From Paraphysomonas bandaiensis (lineage: Eukaryota; Protista; Chrysophyceae): 64,000 nucleotides of DNA. The position numbers and the translations under genes are program-made. Under the pieces are notes generated by a model. That model was given only the letters and a program-made list of their open reading frames with translations. It did not search any database and had not been told where the DNA came from. Positions 1 to 59,000 of the stretch are shown one piece after another. Location: positions 62,001-126,000 of the forward strand of contig CBFFRP010000094.1 of assembly GCA_965644295.1 (NCBI GenBank), read 5' to 3'. Positions within the stretch are counted from its first letter, which is position 1, and every line of letters starts with the position of its first letter.

Positions 1-1055
1 GCATCTCCAATAGATCCTAGCGCTGATCTGTCCGACTCTATTGATGCTAGTGTAGAGTTGCTGCGGACTGACCACTCTGAGAGGTCATCACCGTCACCCA
101 CAGTTCGCTTGAGTGGTTTGTAGTCCCTGTAACGAATCGAACCTCTACCAGACCTCCCTCGCTTACCACAGGTCAGTACCCAGTAGAGAATAGATTCAAT
201 ATGATCTTTAGTCAGACCACAAAACCACCAGTCATCATCCTATTTACGTTCATAATGTATGGTCAGAAACACGGTTTCAAGTGTACAAAAGTCGTGAGCT
301 ATGCTACACAGCAGAAGTCAGCATACTTGCATACTCACCTCATCATCTGAATCCTCTCCCCACTTCACATACTTTTGTCGCACCTTATTCACCGCAATAC
401 GGGCTTTCGTCTGTACGATTCATTTTTAGAAAAAACACAGGATCAACAGCACGCTACCATAGGTTCTTTGGTAATCTGAATGAGATGGTCGTCGGGAACG
501 GGCATATTGTAGATATCCACAGTGTATCGGCATATAGGCTCAGTCTCATCTTTACCGTACAATTCTTTAAATATGTAATACACCGTTGGTGGAACACCCC
601 TGAATTTCAACTTACAGAAGTGTCGAGAGTGTTAGATATAAGGACCTGTAATCTATCTTGGCTTGCAGACCGGGCAATATACGCCCATTTTCGTCCCTGA
701 GATCAGCCGTTGATAATTTACCTGGTAACTCAGCATCTTCCTTGTTCTCTACATAGTCTGACCATGCTGTCAGCCATCGCGTATCCATCAAAAACCAGCA
801 TTCACGCCTCGCGTTAATTTTCGTTCTGCATGCAACGATAGTTAGTGGAGAGCACCGCGCACAAACACAGTATCACTTGTCAAACTTCTTGACGAGTCTA
901 ATTTCTAAACCACGCCGAATCTCAACCCTCTCAAACCTGTCCTCCTCCTCAAACTCCTCATTACGGCTCTCTATGTCTCTTATGATACCAGCTGTGTGGG
1001 GCTTCAGCTCTCCACTCTCATAGGGCTCGAGAGCTGCGAGTTCTAGACTATTCAT
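1..1055 (-). CDS. DUSP-domain protein (domain present in ubiquitin-specific proteases); multi-exon, 3' end runs off the window
   Basis: ATG at 1055. Splicing four GT-AG introns gives ...RECWFLMDTRWLTAWSDYV...LPGKLSTADL...LPGLQAKIDYRGVPPTVYYIFKELYG..., which fits the DUSP pattern. No USP catalytic box is seen within the window. Confidence 0.75.
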
Positions 1056-3948
1056 TCCAATATATCACAGTGTAAGGCTATTGACAGATACAGCTCAAGA
1101 TCTCTGATAGATGGTGGAGTGATTCAACTACAGGATGCTCCACGGACCATCTGCTGTCCCACCATATACACGCACAGTACTGTATATAGTGGTGCATGAG
1201 CAAAATAACTCCTATAAAAACTGGAAAAAAAGGAACTGCTAATCAGAAATTGGCAATTTTAAAGTTTTTACGAGTGCATCCTTCATAAAAACTCAGCCAT
1301 CGTAACTAAAAAGTCCAACTTCTTGCACTTTTCCAAGCAGCAGAGCATCAGGATGATCTCCTCGCTCTATTCTCCTTGTTGCGTTCTTGTGGTACAATGA
1401 ACAACGATGCTGCTCCATTGAAGACCACGGCAAGGATGGACGATGCTGACTCTGTTAGGGGACAACCGATTCCTCTGAATGTGAGAGGAGATACATGAGC
1501 AGTGTTCATTGATCGGTGTGCGTATTCTAATAGAAAGAAGCTCATACAAGAGTGAAACGTTAGTGGCTGTCACTGCATGATGTATATGCATATATAAAGA
1601 CGATCCTTCTGGTACAACGCTACGGATACAACACACTTATTTATGCTTCTACATCGCATGGTATAACAGGGACGGGAGCACAGCAGTGTGTTATCATTCT
1701 AATATATGCACTTAGTGCGGAAACACACGAAGTCTTTCACGGTTTCCACAGACAACGTTTTCTAGCAAACCTCATCCCTGTTGTACGTTAGATTTCTTCT
1801 GTACACTTTTCGTATGTACAGAACCGTAGCTATGAAAGAGATACAATTCAAATATAGTCCCTTAAATAAGTTACTCAGATTCTTTTCGTTAAAATATTTA
1901 TTTCTCTTCCCTCACATTCTAACACACAATGAAAACTGGAAGAAACACTAATCTTGTTGTTCTTCTCACACAATACCTTCAGCAATTTATACAACGTTTT
2001 TGCTTCAATGTAGCTCTTTTTTCAATTTATAGTCATAACATATAGAACTAGTACACAGGTCGCTATTGTCACTTGCGGAGTAAAGTACTTATCACTTTAG
2101 AGCATCAGAATCAAACAGTGCTATACTAGTATTCCAGTACTCTGAAGTGCATGAGTGAGTTCAGGTGCTATTGACAGAAATAATACTGATGATTCGAATG
2201 GTTTCAATAGTTGTTTCGTAAACATGTTTTACAATGGGCGTTCTGTGTAATCCTTAACTTTCACAATGGTGTGTTTTGGGTACATCAACAGAATTCTCAG
2301 TATTCTCTATATCATCAATTGTAAGATATGTAGAATGAAGTGGTATAACTATGTTTTGATCATCTCTAAACATCCCAAATATCTAGAAAATGTGCGATAT
2401 GGTATGGTCATCACTTCAAGACGTATGACTTGTGCAAATCTAACTGGAAGTATATTAGCCGATAGTATAAATAATTACGTGTGTACTTAAGTGGTATGCG
2501 ACGAGCTCACGTATCACTTGTTTTGTTAAAGAGATATGCTTTAAATGTACAAATGTGATGGCATTTACTGCCTGTGTTGCCGTTCTAGATTGATAGATAT
2601 AGACCAGACATTGAAACTGATTTTAAGTCACGTACGTGGTAATATAGTTCAGTATTGTTTACCAGCGCTCACGTTGAATGACTTATAGCTATTTACATCC
2701 TTGTAGTATATGCGTTGAATGACAATATACATGAAAATGTTTAAATTACAAAACAACACTATGGTTTAATACCTGTACAATACTCAATATCATAATTTTA
2801 GTTTCGCCATGCGCCCGTTCACACATGACACTGATAACTGTCTATCATGATCGGTTTTTATAATAGGAAAAGTTATTATGTTAATTAGATTTAGATAAAG
2901 GCTTACTTCGTTATACTACTGCAGTAAGTGCAGAGCTTATTCCCACTATTATACTATTCGTGTAATTGTGTATGATTGGTGAATACAACGCTTGTTGCTA
3001 CTTCTGTAATTGCAAGCAATTTGAAAATTTAAGGTATTCGATTTATAATCGTTAGTTTAAGAATACAGCAGTTGCAGAACTGTAGAACATGAAATTTATG
3101 ATAATATAAATTACATTAGTGTTGATTATAATTTTACCAATAAATTCCTGTGTAAGTTAAAGTTCAGTTACAGAAGTTATATGTATATGTAGTGAAACTG
3201 TCCCTCAACACCTTAGTGTTAACCGGGAAACTAACGTGATCCGCATAATATATATAGTCAGCAGATAACGTTCTGCCCACTCACAGCCTAAAGCTTGTGT
3301 GGTACAAGGGACACTAATTAGTGTCACTTGTGTAGTAGGCGTTGTTGGGCCTTGACAAAAAAACAGGCATCCGCGAAGGGACCCACCTCAAGACCTCAAG
3401 GCTCAAGGGCATCAGGGGGGTTCACCTTAAGGACTCAAAAATCCTAAAGTGAGCAGATGTCAGGTATATCAACACTTTACTTGCTTACTGTGTTTGCTTT
3501 TAGTGATCGAGCGACTCTTACACGCCTATTGCTAATAGTAGGACATTCACTACTCTCTACTGTAGCGAAATATGAAAACTAATGCACACACAACAAGCGA
3601 AACAAACAGATTCCACGCATTTTTGTGTGCATGTATCAATACTAATATAATTTATTATTGTACAATATATTATTACGTAGCCTTTGTACGACTTGTAGAT
3701 GGCAGTAACTACATATCTATGTTACTGTCTGTTGTCAATAGTTGACTACTGCAATTGACAAGTTTAGGTCTAATACTGCTCTCGATATATATCGTTCCGT
3801 CGTTCGAGTGGATCAGCCTCTAGAACCGGCACAGCGAGCAACATCTGCTGTACTTATTCAATGTCTCTCGTAACTCGACAAGTTGTAAAAATGGTTGTTT
3901 TATATAATTATGACTACAATCTGCCAATTACTGATGCCACATACGCTT

Positions 3949-5388
3949 CTAATGTCCACCTCCATCACCGTCAGAACTCTCATATTTTAGCTCACGGAGA
4001 AGGACAGGGATAGATGTTGGTGGCACCTTTCCAACCTCTGTAACTATTGCAGATACGTTTCGGATGGGGGTAACGTCATACTTGAGATTCAGAACTTGGT
4101 ATGGTAGAGGGGAAGCAGATTCAGCCGAGCGGAATCCATCTCCCCGTTCTCTGGGTACATATACCCCATCTCCCGATTCACAGGGCTTCAAGAGATCAGC
4201 AGGATCCCCAAGCTCATTGTAAACAATGGAATCCATTTGTACCTTTTCGGTAAATTTGAAACTCTCTGCAGCAAATATCACCGGCACGCCTCGTGAGTGG
4301 GCCAGAGCAGCCACCATGGCAGTGCCTGCTGGAGCGATGACTGAACCGTTCGAGAGGAGTGCAGAGGCACCTGTAAAAACAAGGAATGAATATGGTAACA
4401 AAACGTTATCGGAGATACAGTACGATATTTAAGGCATCAGGAGAAATATTTCCATCAGTACCGCGTGCTCACCTAGGATGACCCTTGTGGCTTCCCGCAT
4501 GGCAGAGGCTGCCCCTGCCAAAGGAGCGTAGACACATCCTGCTAAGTCCTCATCAGACGAAGAAGATGTGAGAAGCTGCAGCGTGCGTAGACCCTCCCAT
4601 CTTGGAAGAGAGTCCACTATAATCACTCGAACGTTCTTATTCTTTCGCACTGTAGAGAGTACAGAACGAAGCAAAGGAGAACTACCAAAAGTCAACACCA
4701 CTTCCCCATCCCGGATTCCTTCACAGCACCGGGTACAGATGTTCTCACGAGAAAATACAACACGCTCTGTATGGAAATGACGTAGCTTACCGATAAGAAG
4801 GGCTTTCGCATCTGCCTCACTCAGGTCAGGGGATACCTGCGAGATGGCGAACCGCAGATACTTTATTATGTTACCCATTGCCATGGAATGCGGCCGGCAG
4901 CTGCTGACCAGATAATGCACCTGTAGTTTGATATGCTTGTCCAGGTCCCAGCTGAGAGTTGTTCGAGGTGGCGTCTTGTAGTCCTCAATCACATTACAGA
5001 ATGCAATTAAAAGGGTCTCTGCTCTGTCGTCGTCGTCATACACGATGCCACTCGCGAACAACGCACCAAGCTTGTGGATAGCTGGATGAATAGAAGCGTC
5101 AGGCTGAATAGTATTCTCCTTCTGCATGCAGCGAGGCTGGGGAAGGTGATCGAATAGCGCTAATCTCGGCGGTTTCTGATTGCTGCCTCTGCTGGCAGAT
5201 GCGGTGCCGGCTGTGCTGTTTCCCCTTTTGGACTCTGTCTTACTGGAGTTATTCCCGCCCTTACGCTGATTATCACTGTGTCCTGGTTTCTGCTTATGGT
5301 TCCCACCTACTGATGATGATGGCGGTGCCCCCCCTCTCTTCTGCGGCACCTTCTCCTCCTTGCTCTTAGATTCATTGGACGCACTCAT
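3949..5388 (-). CDS. EIF2B4: Translation initiation factor eIF2B delta subunit; 2 exons (intron 4371-4472)
   Basis: Motifs LFDHLPQ, IHPAIHKLG, CRPHSMAMGNIIKYL, DGEVVLTFGSS, VIIVDSLPRWEG, LG|ASALLSNGSVIAPAGTAMVA, ESFKFTEKVQMDSIVYNELGDP and YDVTP...IVTEVG. A canonical GT-AG intron joins the two ORFs. Confidence 0.95.
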
Positions 5389-12095: not shown

Positions 12096-13826
12096 CAGGG
12101 ATAGGGAACAATATATTGCAATACTATTGTTAGGTAGCGTTCCATCAATAGTATTGATGGATTTTTTAAACCGGCCCTACAATATTACAATATATTGCAA
12201 TATATTAGTATGACTAATCAGTAAGTAAACACATCCGTAGTTTTCATTTTTAGTACTTGCCATATTTTATAAGGTCTAAGGTCACTTGATAATCAAACCC
12301 ACTACTCTTAACTAATTAAAAGTTTCCTCATACTCATCCTCTGAGCCATCATCGGTGACATCATCATCACCATATTCATTCAATATTGATTGAAATATGC
12401 TTGCATCCGGCCACAACTGTCGGTTAGCTTTCAGAAACAACAGCATATTAAGTGTAGTAGGATGCATACGTTTGTCAAGTCCAATTCTTCGCCTGCTTGG
12501 AGTTTTGCAATTCCATTCTCGAAATTCGGATCATTAACAATGGGACTGTTTTTCTGTAAAGCAGATAGTGGATACTTTGGCCTAAAGTCCCTCAATAAGC
12601 CATCCAATATGTTCCGGCATTCATAAAGATTCACTTGACTTGATCCTCCAGTTTGAAGCAATTTCGAGACGCTTTCAAACTTCCTCAGGTCGTCTACAAG
12701 GGCGATTATTTCGGTATTCTGTCGAGGAGTAGGAATCATATCAGTAACTGCAAGCGGTAAGTCTTCAATTTTTAATACATGATCTTTTATACGCATCCAC
12801 TTTATACGATAGTATCAAACCAATCCGCAGCAGTGAATCCGTAGAATTTCTCTTCATCAGGTAGATCTTCATCGAAAACAGTGTTGTCATCAATATCCTC
12901 TTGCACATTACAAGACAACAATAACAAATTCGGAGTATTGGTTCGGTCGCAAAAGGTTGCAAATATTGCACTGTAGTGGTGGGAGTCCGACGTCCAACCG
13001 TCCATGACTAGACCAAATGTTGGTGGTAATATATCTTTAATCATATCACGTAGCTTCAGTTCCAACAGTCTCATATATTTTTTCAGTGTTTTTGTAGTTA
13101 TCTTACCCAAAGAAGTCTTATTTCTAGTTAATTTCTTCTCACAGAAATTTAATGGAAGATTTTCCTCGACAATCCACTCCACCCACTCATAAATTGTTTT
13201 CGCCTTGTCTGAAGGCTGCAGAACAAAAGCATCCATGGGACCATTGGTGCAGACAGCCCGTAAATACCTCTTCAATGTCTCCTCCCACACATCATGAGAG
13301 AAAGTGTGATCCTTTAGATTGTTGTATCCATTCCGAATATTCTGTTGTCGTTTACGTCCGCAGATTTTACACTCGTGTTTGTTCGGGACACCTTCGACCG
13401 GACTCCAAAAACAGCGGTAAATGTCCCTACTCTTGTATGCACTCATCATTCAGTTGTCTCTTCTTGTCACTATAGGATATATATACTATATTAAGAGAAG
13501 TACTGTACATACATGTGGAGAGGTGTAGAGTGCTGTTTGAGCTGGCGATACATAAAAAATAGAAAATAACATCAAAAATAGGCTTTTTTTCTTATTTTCC
13601 GGATATTTGTATACAGAGGCGTATATTTTGCACCATACAGTTGAGGATCTTCTCTTATATGACTATCATAATATTGATTGCAATATATTGCAATAGTATT
13701 GTGAGCTCTATTAACAGAAACACTATTGATGGAATATTTGACCAGTCCACCAATCAATATATTTTACAATATATTGCAATATATTGTACAATATATTGCA
13801 ATACAATATATTGTTCCCTATCCCTG
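12096..13826 (-). mobile_element. hAT-superfamily DNA transposon, internally deleted and non-autonomous, 1731 bp
   Basis: Perfect 23-bp TIRs CAGGGATAGGGAACAATATATTG (12096-12118 and 13804-13826). 8-bp TSD ATTATAAT (12088-12095 and 13827-13834). Subterminal TATTGCAATA repeats. Transposase remnants inside. Confidence 0.95.
12312..13449 (-). pseudogene. hAT transposase remnant in three pieces: BED finger plus first catalytic Asp, a middle fragment, and the end of the dimerization domain
   Basis: CKIC...NLKDHTFSH (BED finger) and FGLVMDGWT (first D), then a frame break near 12800. KWMRIKDH...FESVSKLLQ...PNFENGIAKLQ, then a frame break near 12470. KRMHPTTLNMLLFLKANRQLW and an acidic tail end at TAG 12312. 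Confidence 0.85.
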
Positions 13827-28552: not shown

Positions 28553-31138
28553 CCTCTTAACGACCATATCGAGCGTATGGCTGCATAAAAGTACTTATAT
28601 ATATATAGTCTTGTAGAGGACTCTTATTACTACTATGTGCCTTACTGACAATATCTACCGTGTGTAATCAGGTCAGTATTCCCAGTGAATAAGCGAACGT
28701 CATGAAATAACAAATATGTTCCAGTGGCCACCATAAGGCGCGATGACAATACCTAAGAACTGTTTAAGTATCGATATTAGGCAGTCTAATATGCCCTACC
28801 TCTCATTGGGTGGCTTCATACTCCACTACGGTTGCCACAAAGGTGTCTGGTATTACACTTACCAGGGTCAGTCAGAGCAGTGTAAATTGATTGATGATAA
28901 TTAGAATTGTTGTAGTTTCATAGAGATGTGCACAAACCGGTGATGTGGGAGTGCTTAATTCCTGTCAGTTGTTGTTTTTGCGATCCGAGCCAGGAAATGC
29001 ATTGACTGTGGCCACTGCCTTCGAATTGATTGGCAATCGAAGCAAGCCTTTGTAGTGCTACAGTTGAGAGACGTGTTGATGCGTATGCCGAACGGCAATG
29101 TCAGTGATGCCGTCAAATTACTTTTTAATGTTTGCATGTGTTGAAACGTTAAATATCGGGATGTACCAAAACCTTCATAAGATCAATTAGAAGCATATAT
29201 ATCGAGAGGACAAAACAAGAGTTATTATTGATAGTGATCCAAGTCAAGAACTATCCAGTATCAAGAATTATAGTCCAAAGCTTCATGGAATGTACAACTT
29301 GTGAAAGGTTTAAACTTGGCACAAAGGTGTACATGAATTTCTAAATGAGAAAGCAAAGAAATTAACTTCGATTAGTTTGGATATATATATTTTTAGTAAG
29401 CCAATCTTGCCTATGATTATTATTTCCGTAATTAAGTGTTTGAATCATCGCTTGGGGGTGTTGAAGTGCTGTCCGAGAAAGTTTCCGGTAGTTTTAATAT
29501 TCATAGATTTTGTAGTGCGTATGTATTGAGTTATATCCACACATTAAACTACAACCAACTCCATAATGGGGTAATAATATAATAAAAGCATACAGGGGTA
29601 CTGAGGGAAGGTTGTAAGGCAATGAGGTAGCATACATGGGTGCCTTGGCTAGTGGCTATACCTAGGCAGTACGCAGAATTAGGAGAGAGGAGTGCATAAT
29701 ATTCAATTGTTATAATATATATATATATACATTTTCAAGATTATAAAAGCATTGTAGACATAGAATAGAGTGTACTTTGTAGCTTTGGTTTCCTCTGGGG
29801 GCGATATGGGGGCTGATGGGGTGGTGCATGTAAGTGCTTGTGATTGGGGTATAATGTACAATTAGTAGTTGGTGTGAAAAGAGTTTCCATACGTGTCAAC
29901 ATGTGTATAAAGCCAAAATATAGCTAAACATACAATGTTCATATTGTATACAATGTACTTGTCATGTTTTTCATCATCTGGAGGTCACCTAACAGCCTCT
30001 GGTGGTTGACATATAGAGGAGAACTATATCTGTATTGGAATAGTAAATTACAAGCTTATTATTATTATATCTTGGGTTACCTGCTGTCACAGTATATATA
30101 CTTATGATTTATATGTTTTTACGATATCTATGAAGGTGCACTCGGCTCAAGGGCTCACTGTGATGAATACTGGTGATATGCATATTAAGGGTGTGAGCGT
30201 GTGTCAATGTGTTTCAACTCTGTACATATTTTCATACTCTCACTATAGAAAAGATAAAAGTTATACGCTCTATGAGTATAAATATATATAGACTCCGTAT
30301 ATTTAAGTCAACTTTTGGCCTTCTACTGCTCTTCTTCTTCATAATTACCAGATCGCCTGCTTGCTCAATAAGATGCTTAATAACGACTGGAATAACCCAC
30401 TTAATGATGCCACGAATAAACCTCGTCTTATCTTTGCTTTAAAGGGTTGTGACATTGCTGTCTTATGTCGATATTGTCTTGTATTTGTTGCTATCTTTTA
30501 ATGTGTCTATCACGTCTTTTATCTCTTCCACAGATAGAGCTCCATTATTGGGGTAAACCGTATGCAATAAATTACCTTTTTTACATCTACCCTTTTCTTA
30601 ATAGAATGCTGTATTTTTAGGGTAAAATAGTAAAAATAGTAAAAATGGGAGAAAAAAATAAATTGCCGCCATCCTTTAATCTGAGGGTGTGGGGAATAGT
30701 GAGTGGTGATGATGAGTGAGAACTTTTCTCGTTTTTCTGGACTTGTCTGGTAGGACGGACAGCAGCTGGAGGATACAGCAGGCTACAGGCACAGGCTACT
30801 ACTGTACGGTATACAGCAGAATACTGTGATTGTTCAACTGCTGTAGGAATAGAATACTGTCGGTGTATAAAGCGGACACAGAGCGAGCCATCAGAGATCC
30901 TCCTTCGCTGCTGTTGGACCCGCCCATACCAACCCAACTGTCACACTGTCATGATGTCATGGTTTCGTGTGCCTGTCGTGTCTCATGTCTCGTGTAGCTG
31001 TAGCAGAGGGTCATCCTCCTGTGCAGTTATGAATGCTATCAATATTCAATAACAACTCGAGCGTGAGATAACCAGTGGGCTCTTACAGACACAGACACTG
31101 TCACAGTGGCGGGTTTATTGTCCTCGTTGTCGTCTGAT

Positions 31139-34100
31139 ATGCTCACTATCGGGGTTATTTTTTTATTGTTTGGGATTGCAGCCACTCAAACCGAACGAAG
31201 TTTCTGCAGATATATTTCACAGTCTCACTGCGTTGGCGGCTATCACTATTACAGTGACGGTGATGTGAGTGTCTTCTCTAATATCGTGAAATCATATTAT
31301 GCGATTCCTTATTTCGTGGATGTTGATGGTGATGGTGACCTAGACATTCTTGTAGGAGATTTTTATGGCAAGCTGTATGTATATCTCAATGTAGGGAATG
31401 TTACTTTTCCTCAATTTACGGATTTACCGGTTGAAGGAACTATTTTTGACAAGTACAATTCCAGTTATAATTTGCAAGCGCAGCCTATTATGGAAGATTT
31501 TAATGGTGATGGTTTGAGGGACCTTGTTGTTGGCTCTGCTGGAGGAATACACACCTTTATCAATACTGGAAACTCGAGTTCCCCTTTCTTCAACTTTGCA
31601 AACAGTTCAATCCATTGGTTCGATTATATTGTAAATGGTAGCTCCCACGCTTTTAAAGTGTCGGCATTTGACTTTGATAACGATGGGGATCTTGATATTT
31701 TGGTAAGTATTCACGATGATGCCGACGCTTGCACTGTGCATTACCACGAAAATATTGGTGATTCGCACACACCGTCATTTGTGGACAAAACATCCAATGT
31801 ATTCGACGAAGCACCACTTCGTGCTCCAGAACTTGGAGGCTGCAGTGCAACCGCCTCTGATGTGGACAACGACGGGGATCTGGACCTTGTGCTGCTGTCC
31901 AGTGACCAGGTTTTTTTGATCGAGAACACCCTCTCCGCTCTACATCCGCAGTGGGTACTCCGTGACGGCTCCTTAACCAATCCGTTTGCCTACTATACCT
32001 CAAATTCATTTCCTTCTGGTGGTGTGCAGGCCGTTGACCTGTACAATGTGGGAGTGGATACTTTTGTTGTGCCAACCTCTTCGAGCAGCACAACTTTTAA
32101 TCTTATACAGGCGTTTAAAATATCCTCAACAGTGTCGGAAGCTGTCTTCACTGAAAATCGAGATGAATCGAATCCATTCTCGGTACTATCTGTGGGCCGA
32201 TCAGCTATCATTAGTTTTGTTGATTTCGCTGGGGAAGGGAATTTGCTGCCCGACTGTGTGGTGTTCCAATCCATGTACAATATGGATACTTCTTATTATG
32301 ACAGCACTGTACACTATTATCGACCCATCAATGCTAGTGACAGCATCCCAGACTATACAGACTTAACCAATTCCGTGGACGAAAATCCCCTCTACAACGT
32401 TCATTTTCCTATGGCTTCTCTATCGGCGGCGGATTTCGACAATGATGGAGTAAGTATTCTATTTAGTAAATCATGCACGTAAGTTGTAAACATAGTTTCG
32501 TTTATCTAATCATCGCGCGCAGGATATGGACCTGGTATTGAATAGTTACAACGGCCTATCAATTGTTGAGAATCAGGGTACCTCGCCTGAGTCAGATGCA
32601 ACCTTCGACTTTCCGTTGATGAATTCTTTCAAATTTGACGACTCGAATTCCGTTTCATTCGCGTCTCCCCAGTTGGTGGACCTTGATGGAGATATGGACT
32701 TAGATCTTGTGGTGTGTGCACACTTGCGAGGTATACTCTTCGTTGAGAATATAGGAACATTAGCGAAGCCGGAGTGGAGGGAAGTGCCAAACGACGACAT
32801 TTCAAATCCCTTTGTCTTGTTGAATAACTTGAGTATACCCGAAGGCATCTCCTTCGATCGATGTGACCTGGCTTTTTGCGATATTGATAACGACGGTGAC
32901 TCAGATTTGGTGTTCGCCGAAAAAGGTGGGCTTGTGACACTCATGAAAAACAGTGGCACAGTGTCGAGTCCATTTTTTGAGTACACTCCTCCACAGTCAG
33001 AGGAAAATCCGTTTCGACATTACACCAGCCAGTCGGCCTCTTCAGAAATGTTAGTTGGGATAGCTTGCGGCGATGTCGATGGCGATGGCGACCCAGATAT
33101 TATCATAAGCGAAAATGAAGATCGTTTACTTTATCTGGAGAGCGTCCGCATAAACTCAAGCTTAGTACCTCAGTTCGAAACGCATAACTCCTCATCTCCG
33201 GGGTATAATTTACAAGGAATCGATGACGACATTGGCATTCCACGTTTAGTTGATTTTGACAATGACGGGGTCTTGGATTTGGTGTTCACCTACACTTCGG
33301 GCACCCGGCATTACCTGTCGTTTTATGTTGGGTTTCCACAGGACTCTCGCAGGCGCCAACTGAGTGACAAAGATGACGACAACTTGGTCTCTTCGTCTGG
33401 CTACTACTACTATTATTATGACTATGGTGATGATGATCCGCAGCCCAGTGCTCAACCTAGTGCATCTCCAACCATTCTTACTTCGTTTGCAAAGATCGAT
33501 CCTCTACTCTATTCACTCAACATTGATAATTCTCTTGCAGTTCGTCCAGCATTCGGCGACTTAAATGGCGACTCCGTAGCCGATATGATGGTTGGACTCG
33601 AATTCACGGGATGTGTTTTGTATTATGAAAGTGTGAATGGCCGTTTCGATGGCTATAATGTTGCCGATGCTAATAGGATAACAACGACTTCAGTCACAAC
33701 TGGTGATATCAATGGCGATGGCTTGATTGATCTAGCTTTTGGCGCCAGTAATGGAAATGTATATGTTTCTCTGAATGCAGGCGGGGCGCTACATGATGCT
33801 TTCCCTGAGAAACTCGCAGTTTTAGTTAGCTTAGGCTTTCCTGTAGTTGAACTGATAGACGTTGATGACGATGGTGACTTGGACATATGTGTTTTATCAG
33901 ATCCAAACTTCCGAATATTTGAAAACACGGGTAACCACACAGCCTTCGTGTACAGTTCTCTGAACCAAATTGAAATGGCAAGCGCAGTTGAGGTGTCGGA
34001 CACTCAATCATTTGTATTTCGGGATATCGACCGAGATGGGGATGTCGATATTTTGTTGGGATTATCAAATGGGGGTGTTGAATTGTATTCCAACAATCGT

Positions 34101-48113: not shown

Positions 48114-49560
48114 TTAATTGCATATATATTAATTGACGCAGGTTTTAGTCAATTATAGTTGCAATTATTACTTCATTCTTTCTGTCGCAGTTAGTTGAGA
48201 TGCAACTAATAGCAATTTAATTGATACTAAAAACTATGTATTCAAGTAGCTATATACACATTAACAAGCTTGCTCAACTACTGTTATTTCATCCAAGATG
48301 AGAGAATATATTATTAATTCGATCCTTACCGTCCAGGTAAGTGAGACCTTGTTGCCACCTTGAATCTTCACGACTTCCTTTTCGAAGCAGCGTTATGAAT
48401 AATAATGTTCATCTTCCTCCTGTAATTTTATTGACACTCATTGAAAGAATTTCAAGTCGTCCCGAAATTGCACTAGCATGGATGTTCACCTGAAATTTCA
48501 CTTGAAATTGGACTTAACACAGAAAAATCAAACGTATGACAGCAAGTGGCCAGATAGAAACAAATACCGGTCAATAATTACAAAAAGTGGAGTCCCTTCT
48601 GCTGGCATTTTGATAGACTACTGTGCATAAGAGATCTTACTACGAAGAAACGTATATGTCATCTTCACTATTTATTTGTATAAAACAATTTCGATGTTAA
48701 AAATGATTATTCACTATAATGAATGATTGATTTTTGCTTCTGCAGTTGTCTGACTTTCTCTTAGGCGTCGTCAATGAAGCATTTTCTAGAATCCAGCAAA
48801 TTGTATAATCCGTATTTCAGTTTCATAATAAATCATATAGAACTTTAAACTCTTAACTAGCTACACTCCAATTATCCCTTGCCTGTGTCAAATTGACGGC
48901 ATCTTTTTATCAATTATAATAGCAACTATGATTTTCTGTCCCAATGTCAATTAATGAAATTGATATATGCAGCCCTGACAAAAGTAAGACAGTGCCCTAA
49001 GAACTGAAACAATTGTCGCACCACTACTGCATACTTTGTACACCCCATAAATCCCAGTGCAAAAACTCTCGAAATTTTGTAATTGTATAAGGATAGAGTA
49101 AAGACCATTGCAGGTAGGCCTTGTATTCGCTAGGTCGCTAGGTACACTGCATTCCACTCCTGATTAACATGCACATTAAAGTGAATATTACTATAACAAA
49201 GCGACTATATTTAAAGGCTTTGGTACCACATTTCGATGTAGCGGCTTGACAAATATAAAAATGTGCCAATACGTCTTGTATAACACCAACATATATATAT
49301 TTATATGAAAATTTTATTGACGATGTCTGTCATAAAATTCTAAATAATCACCATTACAATTGAATACAACCTGCGTCAATTAAATGCTACGCATCCCTGA
49401 TACTAAAACGGCTTTTCATATCAAATATAAATTTCAGTTAACTCATTATTACTTCACTGAATTTCGTTATTCTTCCATTGTACTATCACCACACAGAAAT
49501 TCCAAAAAATACCTGCATTGGTGTTTATACTGCCGATAAAAACTACTCCAAATTGTCTTC

Positions 49561-52500
49561 TTAGACTGCATTTGGCGAGCTGGACCTGTCGGGAATCGTT
49601 TCTGAGGGACCAAATGACACTCGATTCGAAATCGGCTTCTTGTCCTGCACTTGATCCACTTGTGATGCTCTCTCAACAGCAAATACCTCTCCCAGGGCAT
49701 GTGGAGAAGGACCTGTGCGTTTAAAAAACTGAATAGTCTCCGTTTCATCTCCTAGAACCACATAATACATTCATAAGGTCAGAGCATGGAAAATTCTACA
49801 ACACCTGTCTTAAGATTCTTCTTAACGGTTACAAGTCGTAGCCTAGAGTCCTTTCGGGCAACAGTGGTTCCCCCAACAGATGGGGCATCCTCGAGATACC
49901 GTTTCATTATGAGCTCATAATCCCTGGATTCAGGAATTCTAATTCGCACACATGGTCACCACGACGAATGCCTCGATATGTAGCATACCTTTTCTGTACT
50001 AGCGCCTCTCCTTCCCAGTAGCATCGCTCGATGAACTTACGCTTATTGACCTGAAGAGTCACAAACCGCAGTTTCAATACTGGACTGCATATATATCACC
50101 ACACTGTTCTTACCACAGTTGATATGTAGTCCGCGCCAATGCGATAAGAATAGTCAGCACTTAGTGGACCATTGTTCTCCTGGACGATACATCAACACAT
50201 CGATACAAGCAAACAAATAGAAATGATTTACCTGAATCCTCACGCCAGAATAGAATGGAGGATCCATTGTGATGACATGAGATACTGCAACTGAAGAAAA
50301 GCCACCTAAAAAACCTACAAGACAATGTGATACCCTATACATATGCTGGGTGGTGGTAGTACCACTGGAAGCAGCCCCCGATGATCCCATCCCATCTTGG
50401 CGGGTCCACACACCAGATATATCCACCCTTATTTCACTAACGTCAATATTACGAAAGTGAAGTAGAGGATGCATACCGCAGAGAAGAACTAAGACTTCTC
50501 TTCTTTAAAGACCCTACGTCACCAGCGTCACCAGATTGGTTTACATCGCGGCTGCTTTGCGGAGTCCTCTCCCACTCAAGCATGCCACTGCTGCTACGCT
50601 GGTTCTTGTCTTCGCAACTCTTGTCTACATTTCCCCCGACATCACTACCAGTTGACTCGATTTTTCCTTGAGTATCATTGTCAATCTTGACAGATGGTTC
50701 TGGTGGGGAATCTACGTCGTGAAACACAATAATGGGCACATCATGAAATGACATAAAAAATTACTTGGTGAAGGCCCCGTTCGCTTAAACCACGATGTTC
50801 CCGTAGTCTCCTGGCCAGTGGCGTGATCCTTGTAGGTGGCGACCTGCGAGATGTCAGCAGGTAGTACGTATATATATTTGTATATTCTATATATATACCA
50901 TAACAAGAGTAGGCTCTCCACCAGTATCTTCAATAAATCTCTTATGAATAAGCGTGAAGTCATTGTCTTCATGAACCCTGAATGCAAAAGTAAGCAATAC
51001 AATACGAAAATTGCAGTGCAGCTCACCTCGTCACTTGCAGAGTAGGCGGGTTAGAATCTGTGATCCAGGTCGCAGTATCATTGAACTTTCGCTTCATGAT
51101 ATTCGTGGGCATGGGGGGAGTGTCAAGTGTATATAGCATATCACTGTTGAGAGGTCCACCCACTTCCTGTTCGAAGTAAAGGTGACAGCAATATCATACC
51201 CACGCATATCACACCTGTAGTCTAAAGGCATTTAGATCTGGTGGGTTCATGGTGATGGTGTGAGTCATTGCCATAGACGTCGCAAGCTTACGCTGCACAA
51301 ACCCTGCCCCTTGAGCACCTATCCATTTTCAATTGTAGTTAGCTGAATGCGGCGCTTGCTCAGTCATAGCGATTCCTCACCAACATATGAGTCTACATTG
51401 TGCGTTCTCGTTCTTTCCCAAACTCCACTTAGGTCAGTTTTTCCCGAAACTGTAGACGGAGTTGCCGATGCAGCGGTTTCGGCGTTCTCTTCATTCGCCG
51501 CTTCTGTAGATACTCGGCGCACAGTCGCTGGTAGAGGGTTTGGAGACGGCCCAACTTTGTCGAAAATCATGCTACACTTAACCCGCTTCTCAGGTGAAAA
51601 ACTGTGATATGTTGCATCCTGATTCCAGGTTAGCACATCACAGTTGCAAATTCAATGTAATCACCTCATGAAGTACTTCGCCATTGTTCTGTAACGTACA
51701 CAAAATGATCAATTCATACTCCTTCCCCGGAAGGGCCAATCTATTCGAAGAGTTAAATTGGCGACATATACTGCGTTAAACCACCCACTCTGTGATTTGA
51801 AGCACATCAGGGGAGTGCCATGTTGCACTACAGAGGTAGTTTTTCCCGTTTCTAACCATCTCTACCGCATCACCTCCAATAACCATGGCAATATCAGTCG
51901 TTATCGGCCCCCCTTTCTCCTGAAAAAAAGTTATAGAACATACTATAACTGTAGCAACTTACCTGGACCCTGCACACTGTGAGCTCTTTGTCCATGGTAA
52001 TAGTGTGGACCATCTGGACAGACCCCGTTATCTTCCTCATTACGTAAGGCAAACCCTGAGCCGCTATACACAACATAAGTCGTGGGGAATTAGTGGACAC
52101 GAATGATGAAAATACCTGCGTAATCATCAAAATTCACGACTTTACCGCGCTTCCAAACACCAGAAAAGTTAACACTTCCCTTCACTTCACTACCAGCAAC
52201 ACGCAGAGACTGGCTCGATGACAGAAAGCTGCAGCGAAATTGCAATTTTAAATGGCTGCTACGCCTGATTAAACATGCTATTCTTACCGACGCTGCGATG
52301 AATCCGTGTTGGACTCGGAAACTTCCACACCAAGTGCGCGTTTCCAAGTATTCCATGTGTTTTGATCGGGGAGCTGGAGCACAAACACAAGTCCACACAA
52401 AAATATCGGGGGGAATTTAAAGTTGAGATAAATAAGCGATGCAGCAACGATCATCACAGCGGCGAGGGTTGCTTGCAGATTACTGCCAACGGCAGATATT

Positions 52501-55394
52501 ATAACCCCTGTCCCTTGTTTTACAATCTCGACTAAGACAGAACCAGTCGTAGCGTCTTCTTTCACCAGTGGGGATCCAGTTGAATTAAGGCTCTTATCAC
52601 CTGATGTTGTAGCTACTTCAATTCGAGGTTCTGTTGTCGGTGACTTCATTCCCTCAGATTGAGATTTCACGTCCTCGACCAGGGGCTTATAAAATGCCGT
52701 CGTTAGCTCACTATGCACAATATTTAGCACCGTATAACACATTAAAATGACACTCACTCAAAGTGGTCTCTTAGAACACGGTGGCCCAGAATGAGATAAT
52801 CTTTAGCATTGAGCTTTTTGAGGCGCTTACAAATTTCAGTTTGCAAAGGAGACGGTGCCGGCTCTGAAGGTAACACAAGCAAACCCTGGTATTATCTGTA
52901 AGAGACGCGAGTTTAATTCTGCAAACCCACAATACTTACTGGAGTGTAGACGCCTTTATCAGAAAGCTTTTTCCACACCACGAAGCTACGAGAGAAAAAA
53001 CTTGGGGTACGGTGCTCCTTCTTCTTCTTTTTCGAACCCTTGGACGGCCCTTCAGATGTACCCTCAGTCTCTGAGGAGCGAACTCCTGCTTCGACATTAA
53101 CTACATTCTCTGCACCCAGAAGACATTGTAAATACATGTTCGGCTGGAAAGATGAACAGGACTCTACATATGCATCAGCACAAGAGATGAACGCACCTGC
53201 TGCTGCAAATTCATCCCGGCTACTCGAATACACAGTAGCCTGCTGCTCCTCCTCAGTAGGGAATCTTACTACAGCAGAGAATTTGCTATTGTAACGCTAC
53301 AGACCACCAGGTCAGCTAACAAATATCAACAATAAGGTTATACCAGAAGTGATTCCTCCTCCATGTCTTCCATAGTTAAGTTCTTGTTCGCGCCGGCAAT
53401 CTTTCCACTAAAACTGGCGCGTTTCTCTGCCTTCATGACCACCCCAGGAGACATCTCATACGCACTCCTGCCCTGGCGCATAGGGGACAGCACTATTAGA
53501 GCAGAAAAGTGCCGGAAATCCAGCAGTAGTGTAGGATCGGTAATCCCCACAATGTAACTGAATAAATAGAATTAGCACGAGGCATGCAGATTGATCCGTC
53601 CGTACCTCCCGCGCTCTGCACTTCGAATATTATCGCCCACAGAAGCTTCTTGCTACATGATATATACACATAAACAATAGCTATACTCCAGATAAGCTGC
53701 TTCTGATAGTGTATTACCTTGCGTTTCTTCTTAACGGCATCTGCAATCAAAGACACGTCCGAATCATGTTTGGAGATGAAGGGTCGGAGATTATCTCCGG
53801 CGTACCCATTCAACGGGGTGAGTACCAAGGATGAAAGTGCAATCACCATCTTCATATTACCATAAGTCCACAACTTCACGACTTGTGAAACATACCTGCG
53901 AACATGCATCTGGGGTTGAGGCGAGTACAAGAACATCTCTGCCTCCCACAAGCAGCTCCCATAAGGTCCACAGGTGTGGGATAAGGCCATATGGGCCAAA
54001 CTGAGATATTATATTCGTGCCACTTGAAAACGAAACCGCAGGACCTAAACTGAGGGAAGAGAAGTCAAGGCTGTTCTTGGTGGCAACAGGGCGGGGAATT
54101 GCTACAGTGAACTGGAAGATCTGCAAGGGCATGGCAAACAGTCACAAAACAGTGTATAAAGGGTGCTTAAAGTCTGTATTACATCGCCGAACAAAGGTAA
54201 AGCAAGCGCACCGGAGTACGCAGTCCCCCCCCCTTCCTGCAAGATCAAGTCCAGAATTGGCCAGCTATTTATTTGCTCTAATGTCACCTCGAAGGTCTTT
54301 TGGATACCCTCTTTGACACTATCATCTGCACACACAGAACTGAGGAGAAATATAATAAGAGGCAAAGTGGCTGCAGATATTACAACATGTAGTGCACCAC
54401 ATCGAATCAGTATAAGTACCCACCGACTCCCTCCTTGTGCCTGACATGATAGAGGGTTGTCTCCAACGTAGAGAGAATGGAGTAAGCTAGACTTGGTATC
54501 GGCATACGCGACACCAATACAAGCGACTGCTGTTGCAGCTCACTTCTGGACGCCCTCAACGCCACAGATTGCCTGTATGAGACAAAGCAGTATAAAAGCT
54601 CAGCTAGAGCACGCTCAGAGTCAGCTGAGTCGTTTCCAGGAACAGCAGTCCCCCTATTGCCGGCCTTGGTGGTGCGCACAGTGAAGCAGAAGTTGTAGTC
54701 AACTGTCTCTTCCTTTTGCTGAGACATATGGGACTGTGGTATTGACATGGAGACAATATCCTCAACCAGGCATGGCGGGAGCTGAAATAGCAATGTCAGA
54801 TTGGAACATGTTATTAAGTTCATCGCCATAACCTGTGAAGGAAACATAGAATCCACAGCCGGCCCATTCTCACCGCTTGCCACAAGCAAAACAGCATCAA
54901 CCCAACCGGAAGAGTCATCTGCATCATTCTCACTTCCCGAAAAACTCTGGCGACTGGCAATTTCCAATTTCTCCTTATCATTAAATTCCGTATCTTTTGA
55001 TATACTGACACGAGGAAGGGGTATCGTTGCAGTACCTCCGTTCATGACAGTTGTGTAGCAATCGACACAGGCCTAAATAACAAAGTTACAACCTTCTAAA
55101 AATATTTTCGATTCTTACCCTCTTAAGAATTCCATTAATAACCAGCTTGCAGTTACTGCAGTGTGTACAGAACACCTGCCCGCACTCTCTGCAGTGGTGT
55201 TTGCGGTTAGTGAGAGTGAAGGCGGCAGAGCACTTATGGCAATTCTTCACTTTAGAGCTATCGATCCAGTCGGAACGTCGTCGAGAGGCAAACTCTTGAG
55301 CATCAAACGTGACACTTCCTTTACGAGATTTTTCCCCCTTGAGAACAGTTGCGACGAGATCTGGATTACCGGATATGCCGTACTTCTGAGCCAT
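49561..55394 (-). CDS. FYVE - DENN (DENND6/FAM116-like) - TM - three FABP/lipocalin-like domains; more than 20 exons
   Basis: FYVE: WIDS...CHKC..FTLTNRKHHCRECGQVFC..CS...R|ACVDCY. DENND6-like: LYCFVSYRQ...QQSLVLVSRMP, LWTLWELLVGGRDVLVLASTP, LRPFISKHDSD, IVGITDP, LRDHFE|LTTAFYKPL. Hydrophobic segment at 52375-52470. Three repeats that begin (F/L/I)SGVW.R and end F.(R/K).GPSP. Confidence 0.85.
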
Positions 55395-55612
55395 CTGTGT
55401 GCCCTCTGTCACAAACAACCCTCTGAGTCCTTACGATCTTTCGATAGAGTACAATTGACAAATTGCAGCTCTCACAGTGACACTGCGGTGACAGTAATCT
55501 TCAGGTAACTGAGAGAGCCCAACACACTGCATGATATACGCCCCCACATGAATAAACACACACTCCAGATACACCATACGCATACTACTGTACTACCAAA
55601 TACAGTATGTCG

Positions 55613-55880
55613 TATGTATGTATGTATGTATGTATGTATGTATGTATGTATGTATGTATGTATGTATGTATGTATGTATGTATGTATGTATGTATGTATG
55701 TATGTATGTATGTATGTATGTATGTATGTATGTATGTATGTATGTATGTATGTATGTATGTATGTATGTATGTATGTATGTATGTATGTATGTATGTATG
55801 TATGTATGTATGTATGTATGTATGTATGTATGTATGTATGTATGTATGTATGTATGTATGTATGTATGTATGTATGTATG
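55613..55880. repeat. Perfect (TATG)n microsatellite, 268 bp (~67 units)
   Basis: Uninterrupted TATG array between the divergent ATGs at 55394 and 56073. Confidence 0.98.
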
Positions 55881-56072
55881 GGAATGGTTGTGGGTACGTA
55901 TACTGCTGTAGTATGGTGTACTTGTTGTTTGAAAGTCTATCATTGTTGTTGTTGTTATTGAGGTGTGGGATATAGAAGTTACTTGTGTTAGATAATGCTC
56001 TAGTTGTGTTGCTGCAATCTGCTCCTCTAGCATTGGTCAGGGGTGGACTCGTTGCAGCTGATAATAGTTATC

Positions 56073-59000
56073 ATGAGCGGTAAGAGTTACCAGTCCTCCC
56101 TGTATAAGTATGAGCAAGAGAGGATTCGTTCTTCCCTCAAGACTCTATTCGAGTATGTGGGGGACACTGTGTACTTAAGCTTGAAATCTGAGTCGGAGAT
56201 TGAGGGCATGCAGCGTCTGGCATTCTCTCGACTGACTTCTCACAACTACACCTCTCCAGATAACAGCAGTAGCGAAAGAAGTCTAGAGGGGATCAGAGAG
56301 AAGCTCAAGATCAATGGCCGTCATAAGGAAAGGTCGATTGAGCTATTGTTGTTGTGGGTTTGAGTAACATATGTTGCAGCAAGCTTTTGGCCGACATATG
56401 GGCCTTTGTATCCAGTAGTCACGGAAGTGAACTAGATCAGCGTGCACTTACACTATCCTCAGATATATCGATTCCTCACAGAATGATAAAGCTTATGGTT
56501 TTACTGGCAAATTCCCCTTCCCAGCCTGGAAAAAGCAGTGACGTGGCATATTTCCCAAGTTTATATGTTGATAGCGGATCTGTTGCTCAACAAGATGGAG
56601 CTAATGTGCATATTGAAGGTGACGAAAGTGATGACGAGAGGATAGAGAAAGATTTAGAGGCTCTACAGGAGTGGAAAATGGAGTGCGAAGAGGAGGAGGA
56701 CGAAAAATTCAGTGACGATGAGGACGAAGAATATTGTGATGATAGATGGGTGCAAGTAGAGAAGAGTAATGGTTATGCACAATCTGTTTCTGTGATGCAG
56801 AAAGATGATAGCACCCCCAAGGTTACAGTCGAAGTATCATGGGAAGATTATGAAGAGGATATATGGTGGTCAAAGTCTGCCACATTACAGTATGGCGTTG
56901 ACCTTCTCCATCCCAGCCATGCAATATCGTACCGCCATACTACCCCTTCCTACAGCACGTCATTACTGCCTGAACTGCCAACACCACTTCCCCCTGCTGT
57001 TGTTTGTGCTGAGGATGCAATATGCCGAGAAGTGCTACACATGCTCTGTGGGGCGACTTCTGAGATGTTCGTACCGACTCACCCACAGGGAGAGGGTAGT
57101 GCTGAAAGCTCTGTCCATGTACGGTTCCGTCTCTCTCCTGCAGCCAGTCGTGCATCGCTTCTTCACATGTCTTCCCTGGCACTGAGATCACTGCTTCAGT
57201 GGTTTATAAAGCTGGGTAACTTCGCCCAAAGTATCCGTGCATCTCTTGATTGTCAATCCCCATTCATCATATCATCTGTATCGGAACGGCAGTCACAGGA
57301 TGACAACAGTCCCCCTGCACTTGTGGAGGCTCAGGCTAGCGTTTTGCAGTCTGTGAGAGAAATTATGGAAAGATTTGATACTCATCTCGCGCAGCTTGAA
57401 ATGTGCTTGACACGTACCCCCACTATTACTACTCTGATTGGGCTTCATTCTACTCTTAGACCTTGGATGAAGTTGCTGGGCTCAGCTGCAGGGTTAGGTC
57501 GAACGGCCGCCACCATGCGAGGAATTGCTTGGGAGTTCGCCCATCAGCATACGCTATCATTTCTCGCCCAACTCCAGACTGATGTGGATGCCACACAACT
57601 TATTTTAATTCACCCCGAAGTATTAGACTCTGTGAGTTCTTATAGCTCCCACCCTGCAGAGAGGGAAATTAATATACACATTCCGATCTACAGTTCCACC
57701 CACTTCGCATACGCTCACCTCATGCGCTGTGCTCTGGCGTCTCTCTGTGGTAGATATCTGGAACAGATGCTGGGATGGGTATTTAGCGGCGGGGGAGCTG
57801 ATATTTCTGATTCTGAAAGTACGAATACAGGTAATTTTTGTTGTGTCCCTTGATCAGTACTATATAAATTGCTTATATCAACTGTATCGTGTCATAGTGT
57901 CAAGCATGAAGTATCGAAGTCGCGGCGCGGCTATTTCTTTCGATCGCTATGATATTTCTGTATCTCCACCTCCGCTTTTCACTGGTATCATACAACATGC
58001 AGCATCAAGTTCTAGTGATGCTCATATCCTCTCCAAGCATCATCACGGGCGTGAGCACTCTCGGTCGACAAGCAGGTTGTTCTGGGTGTCTTATATACTC
58101 GTTTTTGGTGACTGTTTTGCTTGTGCTCTGTAATTGTAACTAATGGTGAGTGATACAGGGACTTTCTCTCATCAGCAGAAAAGAGTATATCTGGATGGCG
58201 TCATATGACAACAGTGTGGGAATCAACTCAAGACTTTTCAAGCCGGATGTCATCTGCAGTGCATGATGGCACATTCGATGAGAAAGATATTAAGATAGTC
58301 AACGGTGACTGTGTTAAGTATAATTCGAGTGGTTTTATATTCGGAGATTCCGCACCCAGAACTGATGTCATTGCACGAAATTTGATCAGAATAGGCGCAA
58401 CATTGAAATCACATAGGCTTACTGCCGAATCTAAGCCTTTTGTTCCACCAAATACCAATGGTGAAGCCCGTGACTGTGGACGCGTGTCGTGTAGGTTGTT
58501 GGCCGATATTTTCCCTTCATGCAGTGTGCTTATGCAACATATGGTACTGCGTCCCCTACATGCGACTCTCGAATGCACTCAGCGACAATGTGTATCCCTC
58601 CTTAATAGCGATAACATCAGAATGGTGGATAATTTGGTATTTATGCAGGAGGTGTTTCTGCTTTCTGGAGCAACGGGTATATATGAACCTCTGAGGGCTC
58701 ATCTTTTACTACCCCCTGCTGCATCTAGTGCCCCTCCCAGGAGAGGAAGACAGTCAAAGTTTGATGAGACTGCAGTTATCATAGCGTCTAGTATAGAGGA
58801 TAACATCTTGGGTCGGTTTCCGGGCACGTTCTCCAGCAATTTAGTCTCAGTATCTCTTCCCGTCACTCCCCGACAGACCACCTCAAGTGCAGGGGGCATG
58901 CTTACCCAGGTCATCAATGCCTTATCTATCGAGATTCATTTTCCGGCGCCTCTTGTAGAAATTCTTCCTGGAGAGGCAGTGGGCATATATAGAGAACAGC

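Follow-up and report, generated by a model that had tools for sequence, protein, structure and literature searches.

A chrysophyte gene that joins a FYVE finger, a DENN module and a hydrophobic anchor to three tandem FABP-type repeats

Do intracellular lipid-binding proteins (iLBPs), the family of the fatty-acid-binding proteins (FABPs) and long held to be textbook animal proteins, occur in protists, and if they do, what could they be doing there? The question is raised by a locus in a 64,000-nucleotide stretch of the chrysophyte Paraphysomonas bandaiensis (assembly GCA_965644295.1, contig CBFFRP010000094.1, positions 62,001 to 126,000), which we call the window. According to a 2019 structural paper the family "appears to be confined to metazoans", with no reports from protists (PMC6646235). 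Our analysis indicates that one expressed gene of the window encodes, in this order, a FYVE zinc finger, a DENN module, a two-part hydrophobic anchor and three tandem iLBP/FABP barrels, and that the repeats are true homologues of the animal family. Full-text literature searches turned up no description of this architecture and no report of FABPs from stramenopiles, and the original prediction for this locus, that the architecture had not been characterised before, agrees with its absence from papers and from named database entries.

Answering the question requires first that the parts belong to a single gene. A gene with many short introns was first apparent from stop-free stretches lying in three frames, and the spliced model gives a coding sequence of 4353 nt on the minus strand, from an ATG at 55394 to a stop codon ending at 49561, that translates into 1450 amino acids without internal stops (Table 1). 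Transcript contigs from four runs were aligned to the window, and two single contigs, X1 (4601 nt) and X4 (4588 nt), which stem from two runs and two studies, each cover 49500-55450 while skipping 27 stretches. Fifteen of the 27 introns are listed directly from contigs, and all of these read CT..AC on the plus strand (GT..AG on the minus strand) and measure 46-63 nt; the other 12 were placed by a search in which each intron had to have GT..AG ends, keep the frame open and match exactly the length that the record coordinates imply, and their borders are inferred rather than taken from reads. The exons between 49500 and 55450 sum to 4470 nt, matching the contig record span of 37-4506, and the 27 introns belong to a single short class (43-98 nt). 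One continuous frame at 49561-55394 had been predicted; the splice model returns exactly these coordinates and reproduces the three repeat starts that had been quoted. The interval 52100-52800 is crossed not only by X1 and X4, which span the whole, but also by X5, a 2651-nt poly(A) metatranscriptome contig that runs from the 3′ end past the hydrophobic segment and bridges the anchor-to-repeat region. In a search across runs, about 0.6 of the sampled words of the stretch were present in culture transcriptome-like runs, approximately the exon share; poly(A) marine metatranscriptomes also contain the stretch, and three further runs of unstated kind, probably DNA, contain it in full. Three introns, at 54782-54832 (51 nt), 53110-53196 (87 nt) and 50315-50362 (48 nt), are in frame and stop-free, and their retention would add residues and leave the protein unbroken; the first and the last are skipped in listed transcript pieces, and the 87-nt intron is among the 12 inferred. 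All family and structure searches described below were run exon by exon or on naturally contiguous sequences of relatives.

Such relatives were found by looking up the contigs of fragments that resemble exon 3 (36-51% identity in a full-library search). The fragments derive from genomic DNA, since several end by reading into introns; beyond them, a search of representatives with exon 3 returned only three unrelated repeat proteins (P0005, P0006 and P0011), which were rejected. The only names that databases give to the relatives are 'hypothetical' or 'unnamed'. The same gene, with fewer introns, is found on an NCBI assembly contig, L009, where positions 12384-13547 form one stop-free stretch that takes in the anchor and the whole of repeat 1 and reaches into the first part of repeat 2. 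A Logan contig, L011, carries a FYVE frame, a single 510-residue DENN frame, an anchor frame and a 396-residue frame that runs from the last part of repeat 1 through the whole of repeat 2 into the first part of repeat 3. Because these two loci carry the same parts, the order FYVE, DENN, anchor, three repeats is conserved in both, and both are probably chrysophyte contigs. FYVE and DENN are conserved in two further relatives, the metagenome scaffold L008 (FYVE and uDENN) and L013 (FYVE and uDENN, then a 410-residue cDENN frame). Another contig, L010 (5.7 kb; CAJNJV010011174.1 of GCA_905231925.1), is filed under a Symbiodinium assembly; the L009 repeat shares 76% identity with protein P0014, 'unnamed protein product, partial [Symbiodinium microadriaticum]', and the contig probably comes from a contaminating flagellate rather than from the dinoflagellate. 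The region that is a single exon in L009 (12384-13547) corresponds in the window to six exons (12-17), split at positions matching the introns of repeats 2 and 3, which points either to intron loss in the L009 relative or to duplication of a repeat together with its introns.

The assignment of the repeats to the iLBP family is carried by profile and fold comparisons. The profile alignment combined the L009 repeat, four fragments from a word-based search and window exons 13, 14, 15, 17 (its end) and 18; rows holding short C-terminal exon pieces that MAFFT had misplaced in A5, A8 and A11 were dropped before folding. Identity between the L009 repeat and the window exons in this profile is 53-67% (53-64% for exons 13-15). 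Against the PDB the profile matched 212 distinct sequences at E values up to 10, and the best 60 of the 212 are all CRABP2, FABP, CRBP-II, myelin P2 or squid FABP; the top match (E 2e-7) runs end to end, aligning profile positions 6-128 with CRABP2 2-124. As a single sequence, L011 repeat 2 matched FABP9 (1.8e-5) and intestinal FABP (I-FABP; 3e-5). AlphaFold, given the alignment, modelled the orthologous repeat 1 of L009 with a predicted local distance difference test score (pLDDT) of 87.1 and a predicted template modelling score (pTM) of 0.81, in a topology of strand A, two helices and nine more strands. When this model was compared with the PDB by Foldseek, the top 50 matches were all iLBPs at a probability of 1.00, with target-normalised template modelling (TM) scores of 0.79-0.89, root-mean-square deviations of 1.9-3.1 Å and 17-24% identity. 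The barrel with a helical lid matching FABP/CRABP, which had been anticipated for this protein, is thereby recovered for the orthologous copy. At the column aligned with R111 of CRABP2, a buried residue that holds the ligand carboxylate and to which we take R106 of FABP4 to be equivalent, eight of the nine repeat copies compared have Arg.

The three repeats of the window align with one another exon by exon, at 28-48% identity and with shared intron positions, and repeats 1 and 2 are separated by a low-complexity linker in exon 17 like that of exon 22. In repeat 3 the lid-forming stretch is 6-12 residues shorter and rich in Gly and Ser. For repeat 1 the support comes from profile and fold and for repeat 2 from sequence, in either case with contiguous copies from orthologues; for repeat 3 it comes from internal homology only. 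With this gradation the three FABP-type repeats originally predicted stand, and we conclude that they are true FABP/iLBP homologues; a generic lipocalin was considered as an alternative and rejected. In the PDB, exon 13 and the repeat-exon profiles A2 and A3 failed to match any iLBP, being too short. A word-based protein search with the open frame around exon 17 yielded nothing, and profile A2 detected no other copy in this genome. Three metagenome contigs from the exon 17 scan (L004-L006) are GC-rich and bacterial and were discarded as spurious.

The N-terminal part is a FYVE zinc finger. Pfam PF01363 matches exon 1 alone with 59 bits (cut-off 27.8; E 5e-16), and the translation of exons 1 and 2 contains eight Cys, as for Zn binding, together with the motifs for binding phosphatidylinositol 3-phosphate (PI3P): W-x-x-D as W-I-D-S, R-K-H-H-C-R, and R-A-C, in which Ala replaces the Val of R-V-C. 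The orthologues carry FYVE as well. The FYVE finger that had been claimed is well supported by these matches, and PI3P binding is predicted from its motifs.

The middle of the protein is a DENN module of the Afi1/SPA-AVL9-DENND6 group. In an AlphaFold2 model of the 510-residue module of L011, built on a shallow alignment, confidence is limited to residues 40-210, a longin domain. Among the structures matched to this domain, the uDENN of DENND1A ranks first (Z 11.2 over 136 residues) and DENND10 third (Z 10.8), with other longin domains within 1 Z. The language-model neighbours of the module are all DENN-type (top score 0.96, 205 of 256 features shared), and its shape neighbours in the ESM Atlas belong mostly to Avl9, Afi1/SPA or DENN clusters, with weak TM scores. 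On the contiguous cDENN frame of L013, Pfam SPA reached 22.1 bits against a cut-off of 22, the only DENN-group Pfam model to reach cut-off and in this one orthologue only. A search of the genome with a profile of the module found a paralogue, L012, on contig C123 (32% identical over 217 residues, E 3e-18), to which exon 5 is 57% identical over the core. This paralogue has no FYVE, no anchor and no FABP repeats and is not recognised by Pfam; it is probably the soluble DENND6-like gene of the genome, and its K-R-G-F-F-Q loop, which we take to be DENND6-like, serves as a lead and not as a test. Exon-by-exon Pfam scans gave no match to the window exons outside FYVE, the contiguous L011 module had neither a Pfam match nor a PDB sequence match, and PDB sequence searches with a DENN profile and with a single DENN sequence came back empty; exon 5 drew a blank in language-model and PDB searches, as did exon 12 in a word-based protein search. 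Taken together, the longin fold of the orthologue, the DENN-type neighbours, the paralogue and SPA in L013 uphold the presence of a DENN module.

The original prediction had gone further and called this module a DENND6-type Rab guanine nucleotide exchange factor (GEF), a designation that is not supported in that form. The Pfam models Avl9, SPA, Afi1, DENN and DENND11, searched over the window's own genome, miss this gene exon by exon; in the same search Afi1 and SPA match another gene, on contig C133, DENN matches 17 other loci and DENND11 one. Comparison of the cDENN profile with the C133 SPA exon by hhalign was not significant (E 0.16), and because the C133 gene is separate, the genome has at least three members of this particular DENN group. 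Among language-model neighbours, Avl9/DENN clusters come first and the DENND6B cluster is found only at rank 27 (score 0.92). As to a dDENN part, model confidence is low, and the only likeness is an L-R-x-H-F motif, which we take to resemble that domain. In the loop of the arginine finger proposed for DENN-type GTPase-activating proteins (GAPs), the Arg of the window protein aligns with the K-R-G Arg of L012. The view of DENND6 as a Rab14 GEF has itself been challenged, as a 2026 preprint finds that DENND6A is an ARL8B GAP without detectable Rab14 GEF activity and places its arginine finger between longin strands 4 and 5 (bioRxiv 10.64898/2026.01.05.697756). The module can be placed in the Afi1/SPA-AVL9-DENND6 group as a whole, with DENND6 as no more than a candidate subtype, and it may act as a GAP or as a GEF.

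Between the DENN module and the barrels, hydropathy bears out the predicted segment of about 35 hydrophobic residues, and in three lineages (the window, L009 and L011) it has a common two-part form, with 17-20 hydrophobic residues, a Pro-containing turn (K-F-P-P, K-L-P-P and A-P-G-F-P) and 12-14 more. A hairpin is favoured because the second hydrophobic half is too short to cross a bilayer, and with it a placement of both protein halves in the cytosol. The anchor resembles the hairpins of lipid-droplet proteins.

How might these parts work together? We propose, with a probability of roughly 0.55, that the protein is a tethered lipid shuttle or sensor at PI3P membranes, held by a hairpin anchor and equipped with a DENN regulator of GTPases. 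The hairpin would leave both halves of the protein facing the cytosol, where the FYVE finger could attach to the membranes of endosomes or food vacuoles by binding their PI3P. Fatty acids or other anionic lipids would be bound by the three barrels and handed over between the anchoring membrane and the PI3P membrane, while the DENN module may bind or regulate a GTPase of that organelle, either Arf-like or of the Rab type. For a phagotroph living on digested prey, as this organism is reported to be (PMC4238902), such an arrangement would link lipid salvage to organelle traffic. The idea originally put forward, of a contact-site module that couples lipid cargo to Rab activation, is likewise a hypothesis. 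Several observations weigh against this proposal. Repeat 1 of the window has Cys at the CRABP2 R111 position; Pfam PF00061 matches none of the repeats, and Lipocalin_7 (PF14651) stays below its cut-off on them (13.4 bits against 25.4, E 0.079); and the fold evidence comes from the orthologue L009, whose identity to window exons 13-15 is 53-64%. The cDENN part of the L011 model has a pLDDT below 50, and the arginine-finger loop is not conserved among orthologues, L009 having Lys residues and L011 nothing basic. Finally, a single-pass topology of the anchor would place the barrels in the lumen.

This last point leads to the alternative that survives best, which we consider possible and rather unlikely. 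The segment would be a single-pass signal-anchor, with FYVE and DENN in the cytosol and the three FABP barrels in the lumen of the endosome or food vacuole, where they would capture prey fatty acids. It is the only hydrophobic region, L009 has basic residues before it and acidic residues after it, which fits an N-in/C-out orientation, and a lumenal catch of this kind would suit the reported phagotrophy (PMC4238902). However, the conserved charged, Pro-containing turn that splits the segment into parts of 17-20 and 12-14 residues is unusual for one helix, the second part is too short for a bilayer span, and known iLBPs are cytosolic except for nematode and tardigrade forms (PMC6646235).

It is also conceivable, although improbable in our estimation, that the barrels are no longer lipid carriers and act within a DENN scaffold as spacers or as modules for protein binding. 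The shortened, Gly/Ser-rich lid region of repeat 3, the absence of the buried Arg from repeat 1 of the window and the failure of any Pfam iLBP family to reach cut-off would all be in keeping with such a role, but the barrel and lid of repeat 1 are predicted with high confidence, the buried Arg persists in eight of nine copies across lineages, and the repeats are conserved in three lineages. An artefact, in which chimeric transcript assembly merged a FYVE-DENN gene with a FABP-repeat gene or animal DNA contaminated the assembly, is very improbable. Contigs cannot prove a single molecule, and the iLBP family is otherwise known from animals (PMC6646235). Against an artefact, the same joined contigs come from independent runs and studies, the frame continues from part to part without a stop or a start signal, L009 and L011 agree in gene order and strand, the introns are of one short type, and identity to animal iLBPs is only 17-24%. 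Two separate genes and animal contamination were both rejected.

The features of the gene and its relatives within the genome are collected in Table 1. The region beyond its 5′ end is a divergent intergenic one, shared with a plus-strand gene that has a 499-residue frame at 56354-57853, and contains an (ATGT)n microsatellite of about 300 nt (window 55600-55900; GC content 0.29, GC skew 0.83).

Table 1. Positions of the features of the gene (window coordinates unless a contig is named) and of related DENN genes, with the evidence for each
Feature	Position	Strand	Composition and basis
Whole coding sequence	49561..55394	-	28 exons, 1450 codons + stop; transcript contigs X1 and X4, exon sum, frame check
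FYVE zinc finger	55040..55270	-	Exon 1 and start of exon 2, split by intron 55073-55118; Pfam and motifs
uDENN/longin part	54183..54910	-	End of exon 2, exons 3-4; relatives and orthologue fold
Probable cDENN core and downstream DENN part	52700..54120	-	Exons 5-11 and first residues of exon 12; paralogue, SPA in L013, language-model neighbours
Hydrophobic anchor, candidate hairpin	52368..52478	-	About 20 hydrophobic residues, K-F-P-P turn, about 13 more; hydropathy
iLBP/FABP repeat 1	51541..52173	-	Exons 13-16 and first 26 codons of exon 17; L009 identity, profile, fold
iLBP/FABP repeat 2	50766..51438	-	End of exon 17, exons 18-21; exon alignment, L011 repeat 2
Low-complexity linker, repeats 2-3	50479..50709	-	Exon 22 translation; no family match
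iLBP-like repeat 3	49705..50426	-	Exons 23-28; homologous to repeats 1 and 2 exon by exon
DENN paralogue L012	L012:1781-4348 = G000:C123 ~29280-31847	-	Single intron-free 856-aa frame
Separate Afi1/SPA gene L007	G000:C133:101415-102708	+	Pfam Afi1 and SPA

The presence of true iLBP homologues in stramenopile flagellates, expressed in the sea, bears on the origin of the iLBP fold, for which an ancient origin, transfer or loss come into question. It also adds a use of the fold never seen before, three in a row and tied to a membrane, on one chain with a phosphoinositide reader and a regulator of small GTPases. A natural fusion suggests what its parts work with, and for AVL9/DENND6-type DENN proteins this is likely to be lipid handling at PI3P membranes; the gene thus bears on the role of these proteins as well as on how phagotrophic protists move lipids out of their food vacuoles. 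A wider generalisation, which we offer tentatively and regard as unlikely, is that the FABP/iLBP family is not an animal invention and that in chrysophytes its members, arranged in tandem and tethered to a membrane, form part of a lipid-transfer machine of a new class. This machine would act between the membrane that holds the hairpin (endoplasmic reticulum or lipid droplet) and food vacuoles positive for PI3P, and its built-in DENN module would link the flux of prey fatty acids to the switching of an Arl8- or Rab-type GTPase. All of the parts are amenable to expression and assay by standard methods.

With the animal iLBPs (FABP1-9/12, CRABP1/2, the CRBPs and myelin P2) the repeats share a barrel of ten strands whose lid, a helix-turn-helix, lies between strands A and B, the N-terminal signature F-x-G-x-W ... 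N-F-D-x-Y ... R-K, a buried Arg corresponding to CRABP2 R111 and significant end-to-end sequence similarity. In contrast to these small, free, single-domain cytosolic proteins of about 15 kDa, they stand three in tandem within an anchored protein of 1450 residues, their host is a stramenopile protist, their identity to the animal proteins is 17-24% and falls below Pfam cut-offs, and the lid of the third copy is degenerate. The middle module recalls the monomeric DENN proteins DENND6A/B, AVL9 and Afi1, of which DENND6A has been reported as a GEF for Rab14 and Rab34. Like them it has a longin-type uDENN, followed by a probable cDENN core, and its nearest shape and language-model neighbours carry the Avl9, SPA or DENN families; unlike them, the window protein adds an N-terminal FYVE, a membrane anchor and lipid-binding barrels, and the loop of the proposed arginine finger varies among its orthologues. 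A resemblance in possible working, not in family, exists to anchored contact-site lipid-transfer proteins, STARD3/MLN64 among them, which combine an anchor with cytosolic lipid-binding domains in the endosomal system. Those proteins use the START fold and are without FYVE or a GTPase-regulator module, whereas the chrysophyte protein uses the iLBP fold and carries both.

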